Positions 5,290 through 54,131 of a stretch of DNA of 64,000 bases are shown here, piece by piece; position 1 is the first letter of the stretch; every line of letters starts with the position of its first letter. The notes under the pieces are model-generated. The model ran no database searches, was not told the DNA's origin, and was given only the letters and a program-made list of their open reading frames with translations. The stretch lies in sequence record NC_070650.1; one strand, written 5' to 3'. The position numbers were made by a program, and so were the translations under genes.

Positions 5290-5745
5290 ATGTACGGTGT
5301 TATTGATGGTATCTTGGATGCCGGTAAAATCAAAGCTCGTCTTTACGATGAGCTTAATGGTCATGAATTTCATAGCGATGCCGTTATTGACAAAACAGCC
5401 TTTTCAGAAAAAGATTGGGGTGATATTACCCAAGCGCCAGATGCTGGATTTATTTTTCTGATAAATGATGATAAATGCATATTGAGGAGAGAGAACATGA
5501 ACGACGAAACTAAAGCCATCGAACCTAAATACATTACGCTCTCATCCGGAGCCACCGTATGTCTGGATAACATTTTGGTTGTTGGTGAAGTAAAGAAAAT
5601 AGAAGGACTCTGCACCGAGTCTTATATTTTCCACATTCACTATAGAGGGCAATCCTTGCCGGTAGTGATGCCATACGACGGTAATAATTACCTTGCCCGC
5701 AAAGACCATGCCGAACTGTGTCGCAAATTAACAGGGGTGAAATAA
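5290..5745 (+). CDS. hypothetical two-module protein
   Basis: GAGGTG SD; N-terminus resembles 6116..6523, C-terminus resembles 3745..4266. Confidence 0.7.
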   Translation: MYGVIDGILDAGKIKARLYDELNGHEFHSDAVIDKTAFSEKDWGDITQAPDAGFIFLINDDKCILRRENMNDETKAIEPKYITLSSGATVCLDNILVVGEVKKIEGLCTESYIFHIHYRGQSLPVVMPYDGNNYLARKDHAELCRKLTGVK

Positions 5746-6101
5746 TGACTGAATTAAAATTCATGGACCTGGCAATAAAGCCAATGGGATTTATTGATGA
5801 TGCTTTCCCTGGAGACAGCGTACTGTTCATTACATCCACTACACTCGAGGTATCTGGCGGGCATAAGCTATATTTTTGTCAATTACCGCCATGTGATTGG
5901 GGGTCTCGGATTGATGAGCTAAAAGCTTATTACCGTGAATTTACCTCTGCGGGAACTATGACGTTCGCTATTTTTGATGTATTGGCCATATCTGAGAATG
6001 TAGTCAGTCTCAAAGGGATATTTCCAACAAATACATCGATCAATTGCATTTATGACAAACAGGCAGCTTCATTGGAAATAATTCCAACGGTTATGCATTA
6101 G
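5745..6101 (+). CDS. hypothetical protein
   Basis: TAATG overlap with upstream stop; weak similarity to 6523..6858. Confidence 0.7.
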   Translation: MTELKFMDLAIKPMGFIDDAFPGDSVLFITSTTLEVSGGHKLYFCQLPPCDWGSRIDELKAYYREFTSAGTMTFAIFDVLAISENVVSLKGIFPTNTSINCIYDKQAASLEIIPTVMH

Positions 6102-6115
6102 TGAGGGCCCGATGA

Positions 6116-6523
6116 ATGAAACACTACGGGGTTGTCAACACCATAAATGGCGGCATAGTCACGTCCACCATCTATGACGGTTATAGTAACAAGCAGTACC
6201 GTTTTGAATGTCAGTTATCCCGATTCAAAGACCCCGCACAAGTAATGCCGGGTTATTTATTTGTGCGAATCCGAACCATTGAAACAGATTACTTTGAATG
6301 GTATTGGTCCTGGAGGGCAAGGGAGGTGAATGCCCCAATTAAAGCCGACGTCAGGGTATCCTCATTGGAAAACTACGTGATGACCAATGAAGTCATGGCC
6401 GATATCGATGTTTCACTAAAATCGGGTGAGGTGATGATTCCTGATGATTGTGACACCTTTGAAAAATTCGAGGCGTGGATTACCGGGTGGGTTGATGAAG
6501 AAAATAACGGGGGTGTAAAATAA
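6116..6523 (+). CDS. hypothetical protein
   Basis: 135-aa ORF with GAGGG SD. Confidence 0.7.
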   Translation: MKHYGVVNTINGGIVTSTIYDGYSNKQYRFECQLSRFKDPAQVMPGYLFVRIRTIETDYFEWYWSWRAREVNAPIKADVRVSSLENYVMTNEVMADIDVSLKSGEVMIPDDCDTFEKFEAWITGWVDEENNGGVK

Positions 6524-6858
6524 TGCGTGATGCTGCTGCGGCACCTGCGGGGAATTTCATACCTAACGCCAAAATAATATCCCAGTTACGTCAGGGTGTA
6601 GTATATTTGACTATAACGCCACTCTACACTAGCGAGGTGGTTTTCTATGAATGCGTTACCCAACCGACACTCGAAGAATTTATGAGTATTCTGAGAAAAG
6701 CATCCGTGTCTGGTTTTGTAACAAACGTGGCGTCTTGCGAATACATCGATGAAGATGTGGTTGTTTTAAAAAATGTCTTCATGGAAGGCAAAGAAAGTTA
6801 TAGGCGTTGGGTTAATTGCAAAAATGGATGTTGGGAATTATCTTACAATAATGCCTAA
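6523..6858 (+). CDS. hypothetical protein
   Basis: 111-aa ORF with TAATG coupling. Confidence 0.7.
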   Translation: MRDAAAAPAGNFIPNAKIISQLRQGVVYLTITPLYTSEVVFYECVTQPTLEEFMSILRKASVSGFVTNVASCEYIDEDVVVLKNVFMEGKESYRRWVNCKNGCWELSYNNA

Positions 6859-6976
6859 CGATGTAGAATAATTACTAGCCTTAATTATAATGCGATAAAA
6901 AGAAAAGTCGGCCCACGAGCCAGGCAGTTGTACGTCCCCAGGACGCTAAACACTCAATAATAAATAGTCTAAACCC

Positions 6977-8176
6977 ATGAGGATTACAAATATGTCATAC
7001 CAAAGTTATTTTCTATCAGAAGCAAAACTCGCAGGCATATCTAAAGAGGACCAAGAGTTGGTCTTGAAGATGCTAAAGCCTATTTCGGATGAAGGACATT
7101 CTGGCGGCAGCATGAGCGTTTTTATCCAGTGGTTGGAGGACTGGGCCAATAACCCACAAACCATCACCGATAAGCGCAGTATGCTCTACCCGGTACAAGA
7201 ATCCGTGAAGGGTTTATCCTACGACGATTTGAAGCGGATCGCCGGATACGTTTATAAGACCTGCGCTTTTGAGCCGTTTACCCCACTTACCGGTAAAGAC
7301 GATGAGTGGATTGAATGCCATGATGGCTGGTACCAAAACCGTCGATTTAGTAAAGTATTTAAAGAAGGGAAGGACGGAATTCCGTATTGTCTTGACCGCG
7401 TAATTTGGTGCTATCCCTACAATGATTTCTCTGGATGGGGTGCGGTTACCCGTGGCGGTGGATGGAGTAGCGAGGACATCACGTTTCCGTATGACCCGGC
7501 GGCCCCAGAGAACGCAACAGAATATCGGTATTTCTTAGCCGACGATTGGCGTGAAGAACTCCCCGCAGAAATACCACCAAAAATCTGGCTGCAATGGCAA
7601 CGTCGCCGATATCATGCAGGCACTGACCTCGCCACTGGGAAGCTAAGACTGGACGTCATTTGCTTAGGTGAAACACAGCTTAATGAAGTAATCGTCGCAT
7701 ACGCCGCGGTTAAAACACATATTGAGACAACGGAAGGTCTGACGTTGGAACGTGCGATTCGTAAGCTCGGATGGGTGTGGGACTGTGATGATGAAACTTG
7801 GTTGAATTGTGGGCATACCATCGTAAAAACTGCTGACCTGGCACAAAAAGTCAGTTACCTATTAACGACTGAGCCGAAAGATACTACCGGGTATGCGGTA
7901 CAACAAACCACCATGTTACAACCAGGGAAATTCTATCAGCGATGGAAGCATTATCGCGATGATTACTTTGGGTGGATGAGGACTTCAGATAAACCCGAAC
8001 CCATCTATGTAGACAATGATAGAATGGTAACTGGCGACCACGATGACTATCTATGGCAACAACGCCGTAAATATGGTTATGCGCATCCTAAACGTAAAGG
8101 GGCGGTGCATGCTTCAGAGAACATAGTGGCGTGTGATGGCGAACAGCCACCGTTGGATGGTGCTGAGCCGGCATAA
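6977..8176 (+). CDS. conserved phage hypothetical protein
   Basis: 399 aa; contains FTPLTGKDDEW...YQNRRFSKVFK, a motif of a common phage family of unknown function. Confidence 0.75.
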   Translation: MRITNMSYQSYFLSEAKLAGISKEDQELVLKMLKPISDEGHSGGSMSVFIQWLEDWANNPQTITDKRSMLYPVQESVKGLSYDDLKRIAGYVYKTCAFEPFTPLTGKDDEWIECHDGWYQNRRFSKVFKEGKDGIPYCLDRVIWCYPYNDFSGWGAVTRGGGWSSEDITFPYDPAAPENATEYRYFLADDWREELPAEIPPKIWLQWQRRRYHAGTDLATGKLRLDVICLGETQLNEVIVAYAAVKTHIETTEGLTLERAIRKLGWVWDCDDETWLNCGHTIVKTADLAQKVSYLLTTEPKDTTGYAVQQTTMLQPGKFYQRWKHYRDDYFGWMRTSDKPEPIYVDNDRMVTGDHDDYLWQQRRKYGYAHPKRKGAVHASENIVACDGEQPPLDGAEPA

Positions 8177-8190
8177 CAAATAACCCAATG

Positions 8191-8214
8191 GGGAGGGCAA
8201 ATGCCCTCCCTTTA
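8191..8214 (+). terminator. intrinsic terminator-like hairpin
   Basis: GGGAGGGC-AAAT-GCCCTCCC followed by TTT. Confidence 0.75.
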
Positions 8215-8233
8215 TATCCTGGAGATAACTATC

Positions 8234-8497
8234 ATGAATATTCGACAACGTCGTAAACGTATTGCCCGCTCACGTAAAGTCGGAGGGTTCGTACTGGACT
8301 TCGACGACGGCACCACATTACAGGTTCCCATCTTCGATTCGCGGATAGCCGAAGAAGGTTGTGATGTCGCCATCGCAAAAGCGGTTAAATCTGCGTTACT
8401 GCGGGATGCGCTACGTAAAGGCGCAACAGGCATTGTTGATGTCGAAGTGAACGTCCAAGGTAAGGACATCCAAATTGATTGGATAGGAGAAGTTTAA
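8234..8497 (+). CDS. hypothetical protein
   Basis: GGAG SD before ATG 8234; basic N-terminus. Confidence 0.7.
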   Translation: MNIRQRRKRIARSRKVGGFVLDFDDGTTLQVPIFDSRIAEEGCDVAIAKAVKSALLRDALRKGATGIVDVEVNVQGKDIQIDWIGEV

Positions 8498-24058: not shown

Positions 24059-24077
24059 TGCAAAATTTTTATAAATG

Positions 24078-24085
24078 CATATTAC
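24078..24085 (+). promoter_or_regulatory. early-promoter-like motif CATATTAC
   Basis: One mismatch to TATATTAC, upstream of the secreted-protein operon. Confidence 0.5.
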
Positions 24086-24124
24086 TTAGCTGACTATACC
24101 TCCACTCTATTCAGCTGAGGAACT

Positions 24125-24478
24125 ATGATGAAAAAGTTAGTGCTGTTGTGTTTTGCTTTATTTGCATCTATTGGGGTGCAGGCCCATAACTTTGGACCTG
24201 CCTCAATGCAGAACGCCCGCGGGGTTAATGAAACCATCGTGGTGATGAACTTAAAATCTACCTGGTCTGGTTTTTATTCATTTTCCGTGGGTGGCAAACC
24301 CCTGCGGGATAATGGCAATAAAATTATTCAAAAATTTGTTATTGAGGGAATGACCGCTCAGTTCCCATTCACAATCGATAACAAATATATCAAAAATGAC
24401 CACGTGATGATTTGCTCTTGGGAAAATCGTCCGGACGTTATGTTCAAACAAGAGGTATGCTTCAATGTCAAAGTGTAA
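24125..24478 (+). CDS. secreted protein, Ig/PapD-like beta fold (putative)
   Basis: Sec signal MMKKLVLLCFALFASIGVQA; beta-rich mature part with a Cys pair (ICSW...EVCF). Confidence 0.6.
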   Translation: MMKKLVLLCFALFASIGVQAHNFGPASMQNARGVNETIVVMNLKSTWSGFYSFSVGGKPLRDNGNKIIQKFVIEGMTAQFPFTIDNKYIKNDHVMICSWENRPDVMFKQEVCFNVKV

Positions 24479-24863
24479 ATTACTATTGAGCTGCCTCATC
24501 GGTATGCTGCTCAGCGCTGCCGCGTTTGCGGACATGCCCTACATCACGAACAACATTGCTGAATCGCGCGAGCGTGTGCAAAACGGCGATATGTCATGTG
24601 AAACAAGTCACCCCCAGGCAACTGTTAATGCTGGGGTCTACGGTAATAATGGACAGCAGTATCGCTATCAGGACGATGACAAAGGGGCATTCATCGCAAT
24701 CAGTATCCCCATTGGCGGTAATCAAAACAAAGTTGATTGCCAACCGATGTATGACCAAATGCTCCAACAGAAGGACTTGCAACTCAAACAACTGCAAGCC
24801 CAAAATGAAATGCTCATGAAAAACCTTCAACTTCAATCAGACCGTTCGTTAACTGCAAAATAA
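24465..24863 (+). CDS. secreted beta-hairpin plus coiled-coil protein
   Basis: Signal peptide ending AAFA; SC...GAFIAISIPIG...DC followed by a Gln/Leu coiled coil. Confidence 0.65.
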   Translation: MSKCKLLLSCLIGMLLSAAAFADMPYITNNIAESRERVQNGDMSCETSHPQATVNAGVYGNNGQQYRYQDDDKGAFIAISIPIGGNQNKVDCQPMYDQMLQQKDLQLKQLQAQNEMLMKNLQLQSDRSLTAK

Positions 24864-24874
24864 GGAACTTAGTA

Positions 24875-25378
24875 ATGAAATCACTTTATGCAATCATCGT
24901 GGTATTTATGATGACTCTGAGCACCAGTGTGCTTGCGGCATATCCGTCGGAGCAAGTGTGGAACGCCAGCATCACCAACAACCAAATCACCTGTGGCATC
25001 GACTACCCTAACGGCTCGCCAATCGAAGGCGGCATTCTGGTATCCGGTGAAAGCGGTACCGATGGCTCCAAAGCCATTACGTTTAATTTGCGCACCAATA
25101 CGCCGACCGTGGCCTGGAAACTAACCGAAGCGAAAATCGTGAACAACACGAACCGTTACAGCTTTGGTGATGACCTCACTCAGATCAGCAGCACCAGTGA
25201 TACCAGCGTGTACGTAAATAACACCGAATATTCCTGGGCTCAGGCGATGCAGGCGCATAACGTCAATTCCAATACTACCGTCGTCAAGCTGGCGCCGAAA
25301 ATCAACATGGACCAGGCGCTGCTGCCGACCGGGACTACTCGGATTCAGGGCAAGATCGTTGTGGTGTGCAGTAACTAA
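24875..25378 (+). CDS. secreted pilin/fimbrial-like beta protein (putative)
   Basis: Signal peptide ending VLA; Thr/Asn/Ser-rich; Cys near both ends; terminal strand GKIVVVCSN. Confidence 0.55.
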   Translation: MKSLYAIIVVFMMTLSTSVLAAYPSEQVWNASITNNQITCGIDYPNGSPIEGGILVSGESGTDGSKAITFNLRTNTPTVAWKLTEAKIVNNTNRYSFGDDLTQISSTSDTSVYVNNTEYSWAQAMQAHNVNSNTTVVKLAPKINMDQALLPTGTTRIQGKIVVVCSN

Positions 25379-25397
25379 TCAATACGGCAGAAAAAAT

Positions 25398-25428
25398 AGA
25401 GAGGGCAATTGCCCTCTCTTTTATGCAG
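25398..25428 (+). terminator. intrinsic terminator
   Basis: AGAGAGGGCA-AT-TGCCCTCTCT followed by TTTATGCAG. Confidence 0.8.
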
Positions 25429-25624
25429 TTTTCTTGAATAAACGGGATAAAAAATCACGACTAAATTACTCAATGATACTTTTTCTTCTTTCGCTGAAGC
25501 TATTGGAGCCTACCAGTCCATTACTGGAAGATTTGATAAGGCTGGCGTGGGTTACATTACCCACTAACTATCGGGGGGGGGAGGGTATTGCCCCCTTGTC
25601 TGATAATAACCTCGGAAAACCAAA

Positions 25625-27689: not shown

Positions 27690-27694
27690 AAACC

Positions 27695-27738
27695 ATCAAA
27701 TAAAATAATTATAAACCTATATCACTTGGATGAATAGG
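27695..27738 (+). promoter_or_regulatory. 44-bp duplicated promoter element (TATATCAC core), copy 1
   Basis: Identical to 34377..34420; AT-rich, upstream of a + run. Confidence 0.75.
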
Positions 27739-29025: not shown

Positions 29026-29604
29026 ATGGCTATTAGCGCAACAGCAATTGTAAAATCTAACGATAACGAATATCACTTGGATGTGCTTCCTTTTCTTTAT
29101 GTTGACGGATTAGAAACGGCTGAATTTCGCCGGGTGGTTAGACCTGAACCGGAGGGCTGCCGTTTAGATGTTATTAGAGCCTACATTAAAGGGATTACTG
29201 GGGTCGGTGACTCGGGTGATTTTACTATCGATATGGGGATGATTCATCAGGACGACATTGACGCCATGATGGTTACTGGGCTATCCCCGGATAAAGATAA
29301 GTATGTATTCAACCCCAATCCGCGAATCAAGAAGCTGATCTTAAAAGAATTGGCTTATACCGGCCGCCCAGACCCAATCGGTCTAAAACGCGAACTTTCG
29401 ACGGATGGTAAGCGGGTATTCACCTATGACCAGGATTTTACTGGATTGGAACACGTCGTTTCCGCTGAAGTAAACATCTGGTATAAAGATGGTCGTAGAC
29501 CGCAGGTCCACGTCATTCTAGCTAAAAGCGGTCTGCAAGCAACTCAACTGGTTGCCGCACACCTCTACCTGGCTTACGGCACTTATCGCGCTTACCCGTA
29601 TTAA
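29026..29604 (+). CDS. hypothetical protein
   Basis: 192-aa ORF. Confidence 0.75.
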   Translation: MAISATAIVKSNDNEYHLDVLPFLYVDGLETAEFRRVVRPEPEGCRLDVIRAYIKGITGVGDSGDFTIDMGMIHQDDIDAMMVTGLSPDKDKYVFNPNPRIKKLILKELAYTGRPDPIGLKRELSTDGKRVFTYDQDFTGLEHVVSAEVNIWYKDGRRPQVHVILAKSGLQATQLVAAHLYLAYGTYRAYPY

Positions 29605-34311: not shown

Positions 34312-34376
34312 CGGGTGCTCCTTTTATCCGCAATAAATTAAAATAGATTCAAATCATAATCGTTTTTATAAAAACT

Positions 34377-34420
34377 ATCAAATAAAATAATTATAAACCT
34401 ATATCACTTGGATGAATAGG
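34377..34420 (+). promoter_or_regulatory. 44-bp duplicated promoter element, copy 2
   Basis: Identical to 27695..27738. Confidence 0.75.
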
Positions 34421-42293: not shown

Positions 42294-43265
42294 ATGACTG
42301 ACCGCACTCTTTCTTTATACGGCGCCGGTGGCGCTGGCAGTAATCAGGTTAAACCATTTATTGGTGTAAGTACTCTCCCAGGCTATGCTAAAATGGCCTG
42401 TACGCTTATCGACACCAGTGATAGCAACATCACCGATGGCGTACCGGAAGAGAACGTATTTATCCTGGACGGCGTGGATGGTTCCGGTAAAGTCCGCGCC
42501 CAGAACTATGAGGTCATCCTCAACACTACCCGTCAAATTCTTCTTCAACATCCCTTCGGTGACGTCGCGGTCATCGTGTTTTCTGCAAGCGGCGGTTCCG
42601 GTTCGGTGTTCGCCCCGATCATCATGCAGGAAGCTATCGCCAAAGGCGTGCCGATCATCGGTATCGTTATTGGTACCCACGGCACCGCTAAAGAAGCGGA
42701 AAACACAGTTAATACACTGAAGTCCATGGACAACATGGCACGTAAGAACGGCGTCCCGTTTGTTATCATCTATGAACGCAACCGTCGCGATTACGGCCGC
42801 AAAAAGGTGGACGAAGCAATCCGCGCAGCCATCCTGCAAATTTCACTGCTGGTTGGTACCATGAACAACAACTCCGGCCTGGACAGCGCCGACATCAAAA
42901 ACTGGGTCTATTTCCAGTCGGTGACGGATGTTCCACCACAATTGGCTTTGCTGGATATTATCCTTAATGAAGAATGTTCTAAGGATATCAGTGATCCTAT
43001 TTCGGTGGCCAGCATCTATGAAGAAGGGCACGATGCTGAGTTTCCTTTTGCTTCTGACTACGGTTGCGAAGGGTTTAAAGCCAGTGGAATTGCCCCGGAA
43101 CATAAAGAAGTTCATTTCGTCATTTCTATCAGTGATGTGCCTCAGCTCTTCAGTATGGAAAAAGAGCAGGTCGACCGGTATCGTGAGGTTAAAAACTCAC
43201 GAGTAGTCCAATCGTCCCTCGTGGATAAAAACGACAAAACTACCGACGACGGCATGGTTCTTTAA
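42294..43265 (+). CDS. phuZ: PhuZ/TubZ phage tubulin
   Basis: YGAGGAGSN, IDTSDSN, GSGK.R, tubulin signature SASGGSGS, LDSADI, acidic C-tail DDGMVL. Confidence 0.96.
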   Translation: MTDRTLSLYGAGGAGSNQVKPFIGVSTLPGYAKMACTLIDTSDSNITDGVPEENVFILDGVDGSGKVRAQNYEVILNTTRQILLQHPFGDVAVIVFSASGGSGSVFAPIIMQEAIAKGVPIIGIVIGTHGTAKEAENTVNTLKSMDNMARKNGVPFVIIYERNRRDYGRKKVDEAIRAAILQISLLVGTMNNNSGLDSADIKNWVYFQSVTDVPPQLALLDIILNEECSKDISDPISVASIYEEGHDAEFPFASDYGCEGFKASGIAPEHKEVHFVISISDVPQLFSMEKEQVDRYREVKNSRVVQSSLVDKNDKTTDDGMVL

Positions 43266-52107: not shown

Positions 52108-52115
52108 TATATTAC
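52108..52115 (+). promoter_or_regulatory. early promoter motif TATATTAC for chimallin
   Basis: Exact match 130 bp upstream of chmA. Confidence 0.75.
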
Positions 52116-52244: not shown

Positions 52245-54131
52245 ATGAGTATTAACGACGCTCGCAATCCTGGTAACAACGACGCTGCTCAAGAACGTGC
52301 TCACACTGCGGCGCCGCAGTTTGATGAGTCTCAAGTGCGCCAGGCTGCTCCGCATCGCAAAACCATTACCGGTAAAGGCGGTGTGAACGCACTCCTGTCC
52401 CGTCGTCTCAACCGCGTAGGCGGTAACGAAGACATCAGCAAAATCGCTGAAATGATGCGCGGCTATCTGCGCAGCCAACTGGATGAGGGCTATGTTCCGA
52501 CTTTCGTCATTGTTGACGGCGCTACTTACGAACTGGCGGTATCCGCCATCGTCCCGACCGTGCTGCTGACCGTGCGTGGTGTTAAAACGGTGCTGGCTTA
52601 TCCGATTCTCGTCGAGCCGCGCGATCGCTCCATGGACACTGTCCGTACCGTCCGTGAAAACAACCGCGAACTGTCTCTGCCGGTAGTGACCTCCGATTTC
52701 TACGACGCACGTACTGAAGCACAGATCCGTAACGCCATCGCTCGTCAGTTCAGCCTGAACCCGGCCGATAGCGACATCAAACTGGTCGGTTATTGCACCC
52801 TGCCGGTTGAAGTATCTTCCGACGACAAATCCGAAATCGAAGACCTGGCCGCCAACGTATTCTCGGCGCTGGAATCCTGGGTTCGTGAACAACCAGGTTC
52901 TGAAGAACCGCGTTTCAACCTGGCAGAAATCGACAATACCCAAACTCGCTTCACCGGCAAACTGGACTTCTCTCCGGCGCCGATCAAAACTCTGACTGGC
53001 CTGCCGATCCGTAACGACGTGACCATCACCACCAAAATGCGTGATATCACGGTCGACAGTCTGCACAGCCAATCCGGCGTTCTGTCCGAAGTGAGCGGTT
53101 ATGTGGACCTGATCTATGTCGACCCGCAACCCGAACAACATCCGTACACCCGCCAGATGTATCTGAACCCGGCGTGCTACCTCCCGAACTTCGTGATTTC
53201 CCATCAGGAAATTCTGGTTAACGCCGTGACTCCGGAACTGGTTCTGTTCGGCCTGGCATCTGCACGCCTGATGCAGCAGCCGAACAACGCATTCTACAAT
53301 GCGTTCAAACCACGCCACGGCGTCAAAAACGATACCCGTGATATCGGGGCTATCGGTTACGAGTTCGATCCGACTGGCGAAGGCAAAGGCCTCAAAGCAC
53401 CTATCGATACCGCAGACTCCACTTTCAACCTGCAGACTCTTCTGAGCACTGCATTCCGCCCGGGCATGCTGTATAGCCTGGATGTGGTAGATGGTGGTGA
53501 GTATTCCTGGGTATACGAGGCGCTGGTGTATGCTGCGAATGGCGATGCCGCCGCAGAAAACGATGTAATTCAGTATGCAGATAACCTGACCAACGGCCAT
53601 TTCCGTGCGCTGTGGAACCCGGTTGAAAACCGCGTTGCGGTAGATTCCGGCGACCTGATTCCGATCGGTTATTACATCGATCCGGAAGGCCAACGTAAAG
53701 ACCTGCGTGACATCGACTATCTGGCGCTGCTGAACATGTTCGGTGGTAGTGACATGGACCTGGTTTATCGCTGGTCTGAAACCTTCGGTAATGCAAGTCA
53801 ATCTCCGCAGCAACGTCTGGATGCACGTGTACGTATCCTGAAATCGCTGCTGAACAACAACCTGTTCATCAAACGTATCGCCCATCGCATCACCCTGACC
53901 CCGGCGTTCATCGACGTGCTGGCTACCGCTATCTCCAAAGCGGGCATCACGATCGTTCCGGAAACCGTGTTCAGCGAACAGCAGACCTATACCCGTGGGT
54001 CTACTACCCTGGCTAACTACGCGCTTACTGGCGGCCAGTCCCCGCTGTTCGCGGGTACCCAGCAGCCGTCCGTAGCCGGTTACAGTTCTGTATACCAGCC
54101 GCGTGGCGCAGGCGGCCGTTTCGGCGGTTAA
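52245..54131 (+). CDS. chmA: chimallin, phage nucleus shell protein
   Basis: 628 aa; LLSRRL, PIRNDVTIT, SGYVDLIY, GEYSW, IPIGYY...GQRKDLRDID motifs; directly upstream of nvRNAP beta'. Confidence 0.92.
   Translation: MSINDARNPGNNDAAQERAHTAAPQFDESQVRQAAPHRKTITGKGGVNALLSRRLNRVGGNEDISKIAEMMRGYLRSQLDEGYVPTFVIVDGATYELAVSAIVPTVLLTVRGVKTVLAYPILVEPRDRSMDTVRTVRENNRELSLPVVTSDFYDARTEAQIRNAIARQFSLNPADSDIKLVGYCTLPVEVSSDDKSEIEDLAANVFSALESWVREQPGSEEPRFNLAEIDNTQTRFTGKLDFSPAPIKTLTGLPIRNDVTITTKMRDITVDSLHSQSGVLSEVSGYVDLIYVDPQPEQHPYTRQMYLNPACYLPNFVISHQEILVNAVTPELVLFGLASARLMQQPNNAFYNAFKPRHGVKNDTRDIGAIGYEFDPTGEGKGLKAPIDTADSTFNLQTLLSTAFRPGMLYSLDVVDGGEYSWVYEALVYAANGDAAAENDVIQYADNLTNGHFRALWNPVENRVAVDSGDLIPIGYYIDPEGQRKDLRDIDYLALLNMFGGSDMDLVYRWSETFGNASQSPQQRLDARVRILKSLLNNNLFIKRIAHRITLTPAFIDVLATAISKAGITIVPETVFSEQQTYTRGSTTLANYALTGGQSPLFAGTQQPSVAGYSSVYQPRGAGGRFGG

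Follow-up and report, generated by a model that had tools for sequence, protein, structure and literature searches.

Very little is known about the effects of jumbo phages on the envelope of their hosts. Here we describe three adjacent genes, called A, B and C, of the Klebsiella phage vB_KvM-Eowyn (hereafter Eowyn), each of which encodes an exported protein. They lie in a stretch of 64,000 nucleotides (nt) from record NC_070650.1 (the window), which is identical (100%) to the start of the phage genome (LR881104.1, 265 kb) and has the same coordinates; in that record the genes are LLCLJKAH_00039-41 and all three are annotated as hypothetical. In the carriers found, the trio is present only as a full set and in one fixed order, and it is a mobile and self-contained module, of old standing in Gammaproteobacteria and their phages. 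Its products probably constitute a single cell-envelope device, previously uncharacterised, whose most likely role is that of an envelope complex that is expressed early and has C as its abundant subunit. The stakes are simple to state: at least six unrelated lineages of phages, and many marine bacteria, have kept together three exported hypothetical proteins that have neither a family annotation nor a solved relative. A first-pass annotation of the window, made from its letters alone, had read the genes as a self-contained operon of secreted proteins resembling a minimal pilus/chaperone system and knew of no described function for such a trio. Our survey of the literature and of database entries likewise found no description of it, nor any record there that connects phrog_37374, the family of B, with A-like or C-like genes.

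Distribution of the trio

When A, B and C were each compared by tblastn with 50,697 phage records, the three proteins hit the same 24 records, where their genes are adjacent and in the same order. These records belong to five genera: Eowynvirus, Miamivirus (including relatives of ~253 kb), Maaswegvirus (phiKp24), Siatvirus and Henunavirus. According to the literature, Miami is distantly related to the nucleus-forming Erwinia phage RAY. The Henunavirus carrier, a phage of Erwinia that belongs to the Vequintavirinae, has a genome of 147 kb with the trio inside a tRNA array. For Erwinia phage pEp_SNUABM_01, the trio (locus L006, 5281-6504) sits between tRNA-Arg and tRNA-Cys in a large array of tRNA genes. 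The flanking genes differ from one phage lineage to the other, and the identity to the Eowyn proteins is 30-42% for A, 51-59% for B and 46-57% for C.

The protein collection added a phage-like contig of K. pneumoniae, a 169-kb contig of Providencia rettgeri with ParA/ParB and several metagenome phage contigs, and in every case genes of ~115 and ~130 amino acids (aa) were located directly upstream of C. An exhaustive profile search with B returned 60 representative proteins at E<1e-3, nearly all of 100-160 aa and with the same two cysteines, whose contexts showed an A-like gene upstream and a C-like gene downstream; the names given at source to ten of these relatives are all "hypothetical". Further carriers are a prophage of Aeromonas veronii, the chromosome of V. 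parahaemolyticus and a T4-like Vibrio phage (Schizotequatrovirus; Straboviridae). Finally, 22 species of Vibrio, Aliivibrio and Shewanella carry A-like, B and C-like genes in that order (loci L021-L042, ~5600-8400 in each). At 17 of these 22 loci the set is followed by a gene for a fourth exported two-Cys protein of ~137 aa and then by one or two more C paralogues; an AraC-type regulator adjoins seven of the 22, and the surrounding genes are unrelated between species. As evidence of true homology, profile comparison linked the A families with a probability of 79% and gave a weak link (31%) for the C families, which have in common an [F/W]-x-A-x-I...C-G-[I/V] pattern near the mature N-terminus, a final ...V-x-C strand and both cysteines. 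No match to C was obtained by tblastn in the PLSDB plasmids, no member of the C family was found by scanning the GTDB species genomes, and the IMG/VR search gave just the phages already known as carriers.

The association of the three genes, which the first-pass annotation had read from one genome and expected to recur if real, is thus found in the same 24 phage records for each protein and in 22 chromosomal species. What did not survive is the idea of the trio as a feature of nucleus-forming phages. It is also present in Vequintavirinae and Straboviridae phages, in a prophage and on Vibrionaceae and Shewanella chromosomes, and is therefore not specific to that group.

Several loci deserve a separate description. 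On the Providencia contig (L002, 1-6005 and 9259-10495), a complete conventional chaperone-usher fimbrial operon is located ~3 kb upstream of the trio as a separate unit, and ParA/ParB, the antitoxin TacA, an integrase fragment and a transposase are nearby, so that the setting looks like a plasmid or an island. In the Aeromonas prophage (L017, 6858-9600), the A-like, B and C-like genes come directly after a gene for an M15 peptidase (endolysin-type) and are followed, at this locus only, by an open reading frame (ORF) of 190 aa whose product has a signal peptide and the C-terminal sequence ...GYRF and resembles a small beta barrel of the outer membrane.

Export signals and cysteines

Signal peptides were judged by a rule-based check (K/R in the n-region, a hydrophobic core and a small-residue site at -3 and -1). 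According to this rule, all three products and 33 of 33 family members present a Sec-type signal peptide, as the first-pass annotation had proposed, and the alignments place the cleavage after VQA in A, AFA in B and VLA in C. None of the three family alignments has a conserved lipobox; a lipoprotein reading of the LLSC sequence of B was considered and dropped because LLSC is not conserved. The two cysteines per mature protein, also noted at first pass, proved invariant in 11 (A), 36 (B) and 63 (C) aligned sequences, with exactly one pair in each mature protein. This invariance suggests that A, B and C each hold one periplasmic disulfide.

Predicted structures of the three proteins

The AlphaFold2 (AF2) model of A, with a mean predicted local distance difference test (pLDDT) score of 79, consists of seven strands arranged in a sandwich, and on the basis of this model A is a single-domain immunoglobulin (Ig)-like beta sandwich. 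Its Cys pair (C97/C112) is C-terminal and, together with F23, F80 and P81, invariant in the 11 relatives. Foldseek comparison with the PDB gave only generic Ig-like matches (E of at least 0.01, template modelling (TM) score 0.3-0.48), among them accessory domains of glycosidases, CsgH, SOD-like domains, a FixG-related protein and, weakly, the proteinase inhibitor 3isy. The CsgH match (E 0.02, TM 0.40-0.45) is no better than those to many unrelated Ig-like domains. The first-pass label "Ig/PapD-like" therefore keeps its first half, given the seven-strand sandwich, but loses the second: A is a single domain of ~97 aa, belongs to no Pfam family, has no PapD hit at E<=1 and finds no PapD-type chaperone in its top 50 PDB fold matches. 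We also considered a copper site of the histidine-brace type at the N-terminus of mature A, but dropped it, as the histidine is not conserved.

For B, column statistics over 36 relatives revealed two short strands (residues 52-59 and 75-83) with a strict alternation of hydrophobic and polar residues, separated by a loop that varies in length (12-29 residues) and is rich in N, D, Y and G. The Cys pair C45/C92 brackets the entire hairpin. After it comes a C-terminal tail of 29-55 residues which is nearly free of Pro and Gly and has heptad spacing, and the insertions and deletions in this tail among close relatives are exactly 7 residues long. The sequence thus describes B as a putative disulfide-flanked amphipathic beta hairpin followed by a heptad coiled coil of variable length; the hairpin and the coiled coil are as the first-pass annotation had described them. 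B matches phrog_37374 (E 1e-7), as do 33 of the 36 relatives (best E 6e-17); this is the sole family membership that holds for the trio, and the annotated function of the family is unknown. A repetitive protein of 1039 aa (P0034) gave five matches to residues 33-75 of the B profile (E 1.5e-10); it may have in common with B just the Cys-containing strand motif.

The AF2 model of C has a mean pLDDT of 85.6, and its top fold matches in the PDB are subunits of chaperone-usher pili: CfaB of CFA/I pili (E 2e-3), CS17, the pilin domain of PapG, FimA/FimI, PapE and PapA. Further down the list are other strand-complemented filaments, namely the Sulfolobus 0406 thread and the uromodulin/GP2/ZP filaments. 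The pilin matches have probabilities of 0.9-1.0, but the E-value is 2e-3 at best, the TM score 0.37-0.50 and the root-mean-square deviation (rmsd) 6-13 Å. Two features of the 63 aligned relatives are to be noted: positions 27, 29, 31 and 33 are hydrophobic in alternation ahead of the invariant Cys40-Gly41, and the last strand (157-165) alternates likewise up to the equally invariant Cys165. Sequence comparison gave a different picture, since Pfam scans of C and 30 relatives returned a single SCPU match (E 0.086) and no Fimbrial or Fimbrial_CS1 membership, and profile searches of the PDB with C found no pilin. A fold search of C in BFVD gave just two unnamed viral proteins. The pilin-like fold proposed at first pass is consequently reasonable but unproven: the best PDB folds are indeed chaperone-usher pilins, but these matches are weak and no sequence support accompanies them.

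Codon usage sets C apart from its two partners. The G+C content at third codon positions (GC3) of gene C is 0.667, the highest of the 74 ORFs of the window (z = 3.5), in agreement with the host-like, C-ending codons noticed at first pass. The GC3 of C exceeds that of both A and B in Eowyn, phiKp24, KpLz-2_45, pEp_SNUABM_01 and one metagenome phage, and exceeds that of B in Miami; in AT-rich carriers, all three genes match their genome. Recent capture from a host was considered as the source of this bias and rejected: capture of the set would mark all three genes, whereas A and B show no bias and the pattern recurs in C alone in other carriers, which fits selection for high expression. The codon statistics thus point to high expression of C more than to its recent capture, and C would be the abundant component.

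Transcription unit

The genes A, B and C are arranged head to tail on the + strand, with an overlap of 14 nt between A and B and a gap of 11 nt between B and C, and each of the three starts is preceded by a purine-rich ribosome-binding site of GAGG/AGGA type. The annotated start of A lies 36 nt downstream of the sequence ATATYACTTNGNTG (24079-24092), which is part of a longer promoter-like motif (Table 1). This sequence is found seven times in the window, every copy on the + strand, against a chance expectation of 0.03, a count that is descriptive because the motif pattern was built from these same seven sites. Five of the seven copies are 35-43 nt ahead of a start codon; the copies are co-oriented with the genes, and the one at 52109 is upstream of the gene for the chimallin homologue. 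Ahead of gene A, the motif is base-for-base unchanged in a relative whose proteins are 87% identical. A sigma-70 scan found no promoter match upstream of A. From its sequence context, ATATYACTTNGNTG is a candidate early-promoter element of Eowyn-type phages, and the recurring motif provides a working marker of presumed early transcription units in these phages. Two of its copies (27690-27732 and 34372-34414) have a much longer identical stretch in common, which suggests a duplicated promoter region. As for the copy at 29070, it falls within the annotated gene 00050, suggesting that the start of this gene may be mis-set.

In jumbo phages which encode their own RNA polymerase, conserved AT-rich intergenic motifs mark the early promoters, used by the virion RNA polymerase, while middle and late promoters are not detectable bioinformatically (PMC7598289). 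The trio is preceded by such a conserved AT-rich intergenic motif, common to other presumed early operons. As this motif is shared with the chimallin gene, the unit is, following the same rule, probably transcribed early by the virion RNA polymerase in Eowyn, with a timing deduced from the motif.

The unit ends with a terminator-like hairpin, whose hairpin proper (25398-25419) has a folding energy of -19.2 kcal/mol (z = -3.1). The relative keeps the stem through one compensatory pair and differs in the loop. The Rfam scan of the region from 23 to 27 kb gave no match. Both the promoter-like motif and the terminator claimed in the first-pass annotation are thus recovered, as is the compact three-gene operon itself, whose members are moreover inherited together.

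The layout varies elsewhere. Downstream of C, Eowyn has a spacer of 246 bp (25379-25624) with a second G-run hairpin at ~25573-25600; a close relative (L046, 6575-7900) carries in this spacer an extra gene of 441 aa with a faint AAA match, which marks the spacer as a variable site of insertion or deletion. In Klebsiella phage Miami (L004, 2698-6539), the trio makes up the final three of nine genes bounded by two annotated terminators; this stretch also includes an annotated "putative secreted protein" (gp128). The self-contained layout of Eowyn is therefore not universal.

Genomic setting

The first-pass annotation had placed the trio in a nucleus-forming phage, and this setting is right for Eowyn: the window contains a chimallin homologue and an annotated tubulin-like gene, and the Eowynvirus relatives have been reported to encode a nuclear shell protein, with a close relative forming a phage nucleus (PMC13757433; bioRxiv 10.1101/2024.10.29.620934). 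The GC3 of the chimallin gene, 0.62, is the second-highest of the window.

Table 1. Coordinates of the trio, its putative signals and two other genes of the window.
Feature	Position	Strand	Basis or remark
Gene A, exported, single Ig-like beta sandwich by model	24125 (annotated 24128)-24478	+	ORF, 117 aa, ~97 aa mature
Gene B, exported, putative amphipathic hairpin and coiled coil	24465-24863	+	ORF, 132 aa
Gene C, exported, Ig/pilin-like by model	24875-25378	+	ORF, 167 aa
Promoter-like motif TATAAA-N3-ATATTACTT-N-G-N-TG	24070..24092	+	Phage-specific, ahead of gene A
Copies of ATATYACTTNGNTG	10163, 18119, 24079, 27719, 29070, 34401, 52109	+	Window scan
Terminator-like hairpin, 9-bp G+C-rich stem, 4-nt loop, then T-rich stretch	25398..25435	+	Scan and folding
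Tubulin-like protein	42294-43265		Annotation
Chimallin homologue	52245-54131		Pfam Chimallin_Phikzvirus 3e-39; PDB chimallins 1e-28

Proposed role and alternative explanations

The explanation that we tentatively prefer overall, at somewhat less than even confidence, is that the trio is a horizontally mobile accessory module whose three products work jointly outside the cytoplasm to change the envelope early in infection, with exclusion as the favoured benefit. From the model and the sequence statistics, C would be an Ig/pilin-like domain and the major structural component. A would be its small Ig-like partner, with a possible role in keeping C soluble or in capping it in the periplasm. To judge from its sequence, B would be an oligomer, made of a disulfide-stapled amphipathic hairpin as a head on a coiled-coil stalk of variable length, and may anchor the assembly at the outer envelope or organise it there. 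In Eowyn, the common motif suggests that the unit would be switched on early, together with chimallin. The complex would then alter the envelope of the newly infected cell; its most plausible effect would be to exclude rival phages or otherwise to protect the carrier, and prophages and Vibrionaceae chromosomes would be served likewise by the module. Alteration of the carrier-cell surface or periplasm as the purpose is speculative, and exclusion is the most natural benefit that virulent phages, prophages and chromosomal islands would have in common. The exclusion or receptor masking proposed at first pass would be a role of this kind.

Several observations weigh against this explanation. Neither PHROGs nor PADLOC gave a match to a known exclusion or defence protein, and in Vibrio the trio is flanked by ordinary genes for regulation and transport and not by defence islands. 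C is highly conserved between distant phages (46-57% identity), which is unexpected for a protein facing fast-evolving rival phages and fits a conserved host target better. The fold matches are weak (TM 0.4-0.5), the early timing is deduced from a motif, and the joint action of A, B and C is equally a deduction.

The same proteins could build a true fibre or coat without an usher, C polymerising by beta-strand complementation through its N-terminal segment, with A as a one-domain chaperone and B as the exit or anchor in the outer membrane. The product would then be an adhesive or matrix structure, a colonisation factor of Vibrionaceae carried along by phages. The fold matches of C to chaperone-usher pilins, to the Sulfolobus thread and to the uromodulin/GP2/ZP filaments speak for such a structure, as do its conserved alternating segment ahead of Cys40-Gly41 and its codon bias, which suggests an abundant subunit; the two or three C paralogues of the Vibrio loci recall the major and minor subunits of pilus operons, and an AraC-type regulator adjoins 7 of the 22 loci. 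However, no usher, secretin or known channel was seen in more than 30 contexts, by sequence C belongs to none of the Fimbrial, CS1 and SCPU families, the TM score is only 0.4-0.5 with a large rmsd, the role of B as a barrel is pure conjecture, and there is no clear reason for virulent phages of five lineages to keep an adhesin. We consider a fibre or coat of this kind fairly unlikely. Its most far-reaching form is quite unlikely: a minimal usher-independent assembly system with A as chaperone, B as outer-membrane anchor or conduit and C as polymer or coat. Such a system, unrecognised until now, would be common in Vibrionaceae, and virulent phages would have acquired it several times over in order to re-surface the cells that they infect.

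The strong conservation of C would also suit three soluble periplasmic binding or inhibitor proteins which neutralise enzymes or toxins acting on the envelope, such as lysozymes, proteases, bacteriocins or contact-delivered effectors, so that the infected or carrier cell survives until the carrier is done. Small disulfide-stabilised periplasmic beta proteins are of the right type for this task, their phage, prophage and variable chromosomal locations are like those of immunity genes, and the proteinase inhibitor 3isy is among the weak fold matches of A. On the other hand, no Ivy, PliC/MliC or ecotin fold appears among the top matches of A or C, the coiled-coil stalk of B is atypical, and the strict co-occurrence of three different proteins in a fixed order suggests one assembly and not independent inhibitors. 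This explanation is improbable as well. We judge very improbable that the trio is an accessory of lysis or of its timing, with B as a spanin-like or signal-sensing periplasmic coiled-coil protein. B is indeed a predicted periplasmic coiled coil with Cys residues, and in the Aeromonas prophage the trio is directly 3' of the M15 peptidase gene, but B has a cleavable signal peptide and neither a conserved lipobox nor a membrane anchor. It is mainly the genomic positions and the early-type motif that make a lysis role unlikely: no recognisable lysis genes are beside the trio in Eowyn, Miami, the Kp24-like phages or pEp_SNUABM_01, the Vibrio chromosomal copies have no surrounding phage genes, and the upstream motif, being the same as that of chimallin, suggests early and not late expression.

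If A, B and C do form one envelope structure, as the preferred explanation holds, they would represent a new module at the phage-host surface, small and amenable to experiment. One PHROG would thereby obtain a function, and so would dozens of proteins called hypothetical in Vibrio, Aeromonas and Shewanella and in the genomes of Klebsiella and Erwinia phages.

Comparison with known systems

Scans of A, B, C and distant relatives against Pfam, NCBIfam and PADLOC gave nothing above noise, and sequence and profile searches of the PDB with four alignments found no relative. PADLOC had no match for A, B, C or either neighbour; in PHROGs, the only family was that of B, phrog_37374, and none annotated for exclusion was hit. 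As for the components that define known systems, no usher (~800 aa, Pfam Usher/PapC), secretin or other known channel was found within the trio loci (over 30 contexts), and no usher in or next to the trio in Eowyn, the other phages or the 22 Vibrionaceae/Shewanella loci. A is not a two-domain PapD-like chaperone (PapD_N and PapD_C, ~220 aa). Neither a CsgG-like lipoprotein channel nor an amyloid-repeat subunit was present in any context, and no Pfam match to them was obtained. Spanins (Rz/Rz1 type) pair a membrane-anchored coiled-coil protein with a lipoprotein of the outer membrane, both from the lysis cassette. They are set apart by the cleavable-type signal peptide of B, with its conserved A-x-A, and no endolysin or holin gene adjoins the trio in Eowyn. 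The trio belongs neither to the chaperone-usher, curli or spanin systems nor to any of the listed defence systems.

The resemblance to class 5 (CFA/I CfaB, CS17) and Pap/Fim chaperone-usher pili concerns mainly C. The components are exported by Sec, C has a mature length of ~145-150 aa and is Ig-like by model with pilins as its best PDB fold matches, it combines an N-terminal alternating hydrophobic segment with a C-terminal beta strand, and the Vibrio loci have paralogous C subunits as chaperone-usher operons do. As regards polymerisation by donor-strand exchange, the alternating N-terminal segment was the one relevant feature observed in C. Unlike these pili, the trio has no usher, no two-domain PapD-like chaperone and no membership in Pfam Fimbrial, CS1 or SCPU; the Cys pair of C joins the start of the domain to its very end, the TM scores of 0.4-0.5 are borderline, and the coiled-coil protein B has no counterpart there. 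Curli offer another parallel: A resembles the CsgC/CsgH chaperones as a periplasmic seven-strand sandwich of ~100 aa with a Cys pair, and the three products are similar in size to CsgC, CsgE/F and CsgA. In contrast with curli, the trio has neither a CsgG-type channel nor any similarity in sequence, and C contains no amyloid repeats.

The genetics of the trio point to still another group. Phage morons and exclusion genes which act on the envelope include Bor and Lom of lambda (for Lom, see bioRxiv 10.64898/2026.10.24.761521), Llp of T5 and Imm and Sp of T4. Those morons are single lipoproteins or beta barrels, whereas the trio consists of three soluble-looking proteins in a fixed set, and it differs from the known exclusion genes in having no match to an annotated PHROG or PADLOC family. 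Like morons, it is made of small exported proteins in a self-contained unit with its own putative promoter and terminator, would be dispensable for the core life cycle, and is swapped between unrelated phages at variable positions. By analogy, the trio is most like a pilus or coat operon in miniature in its presumed mode of working and most like a phage moron in its genetics.

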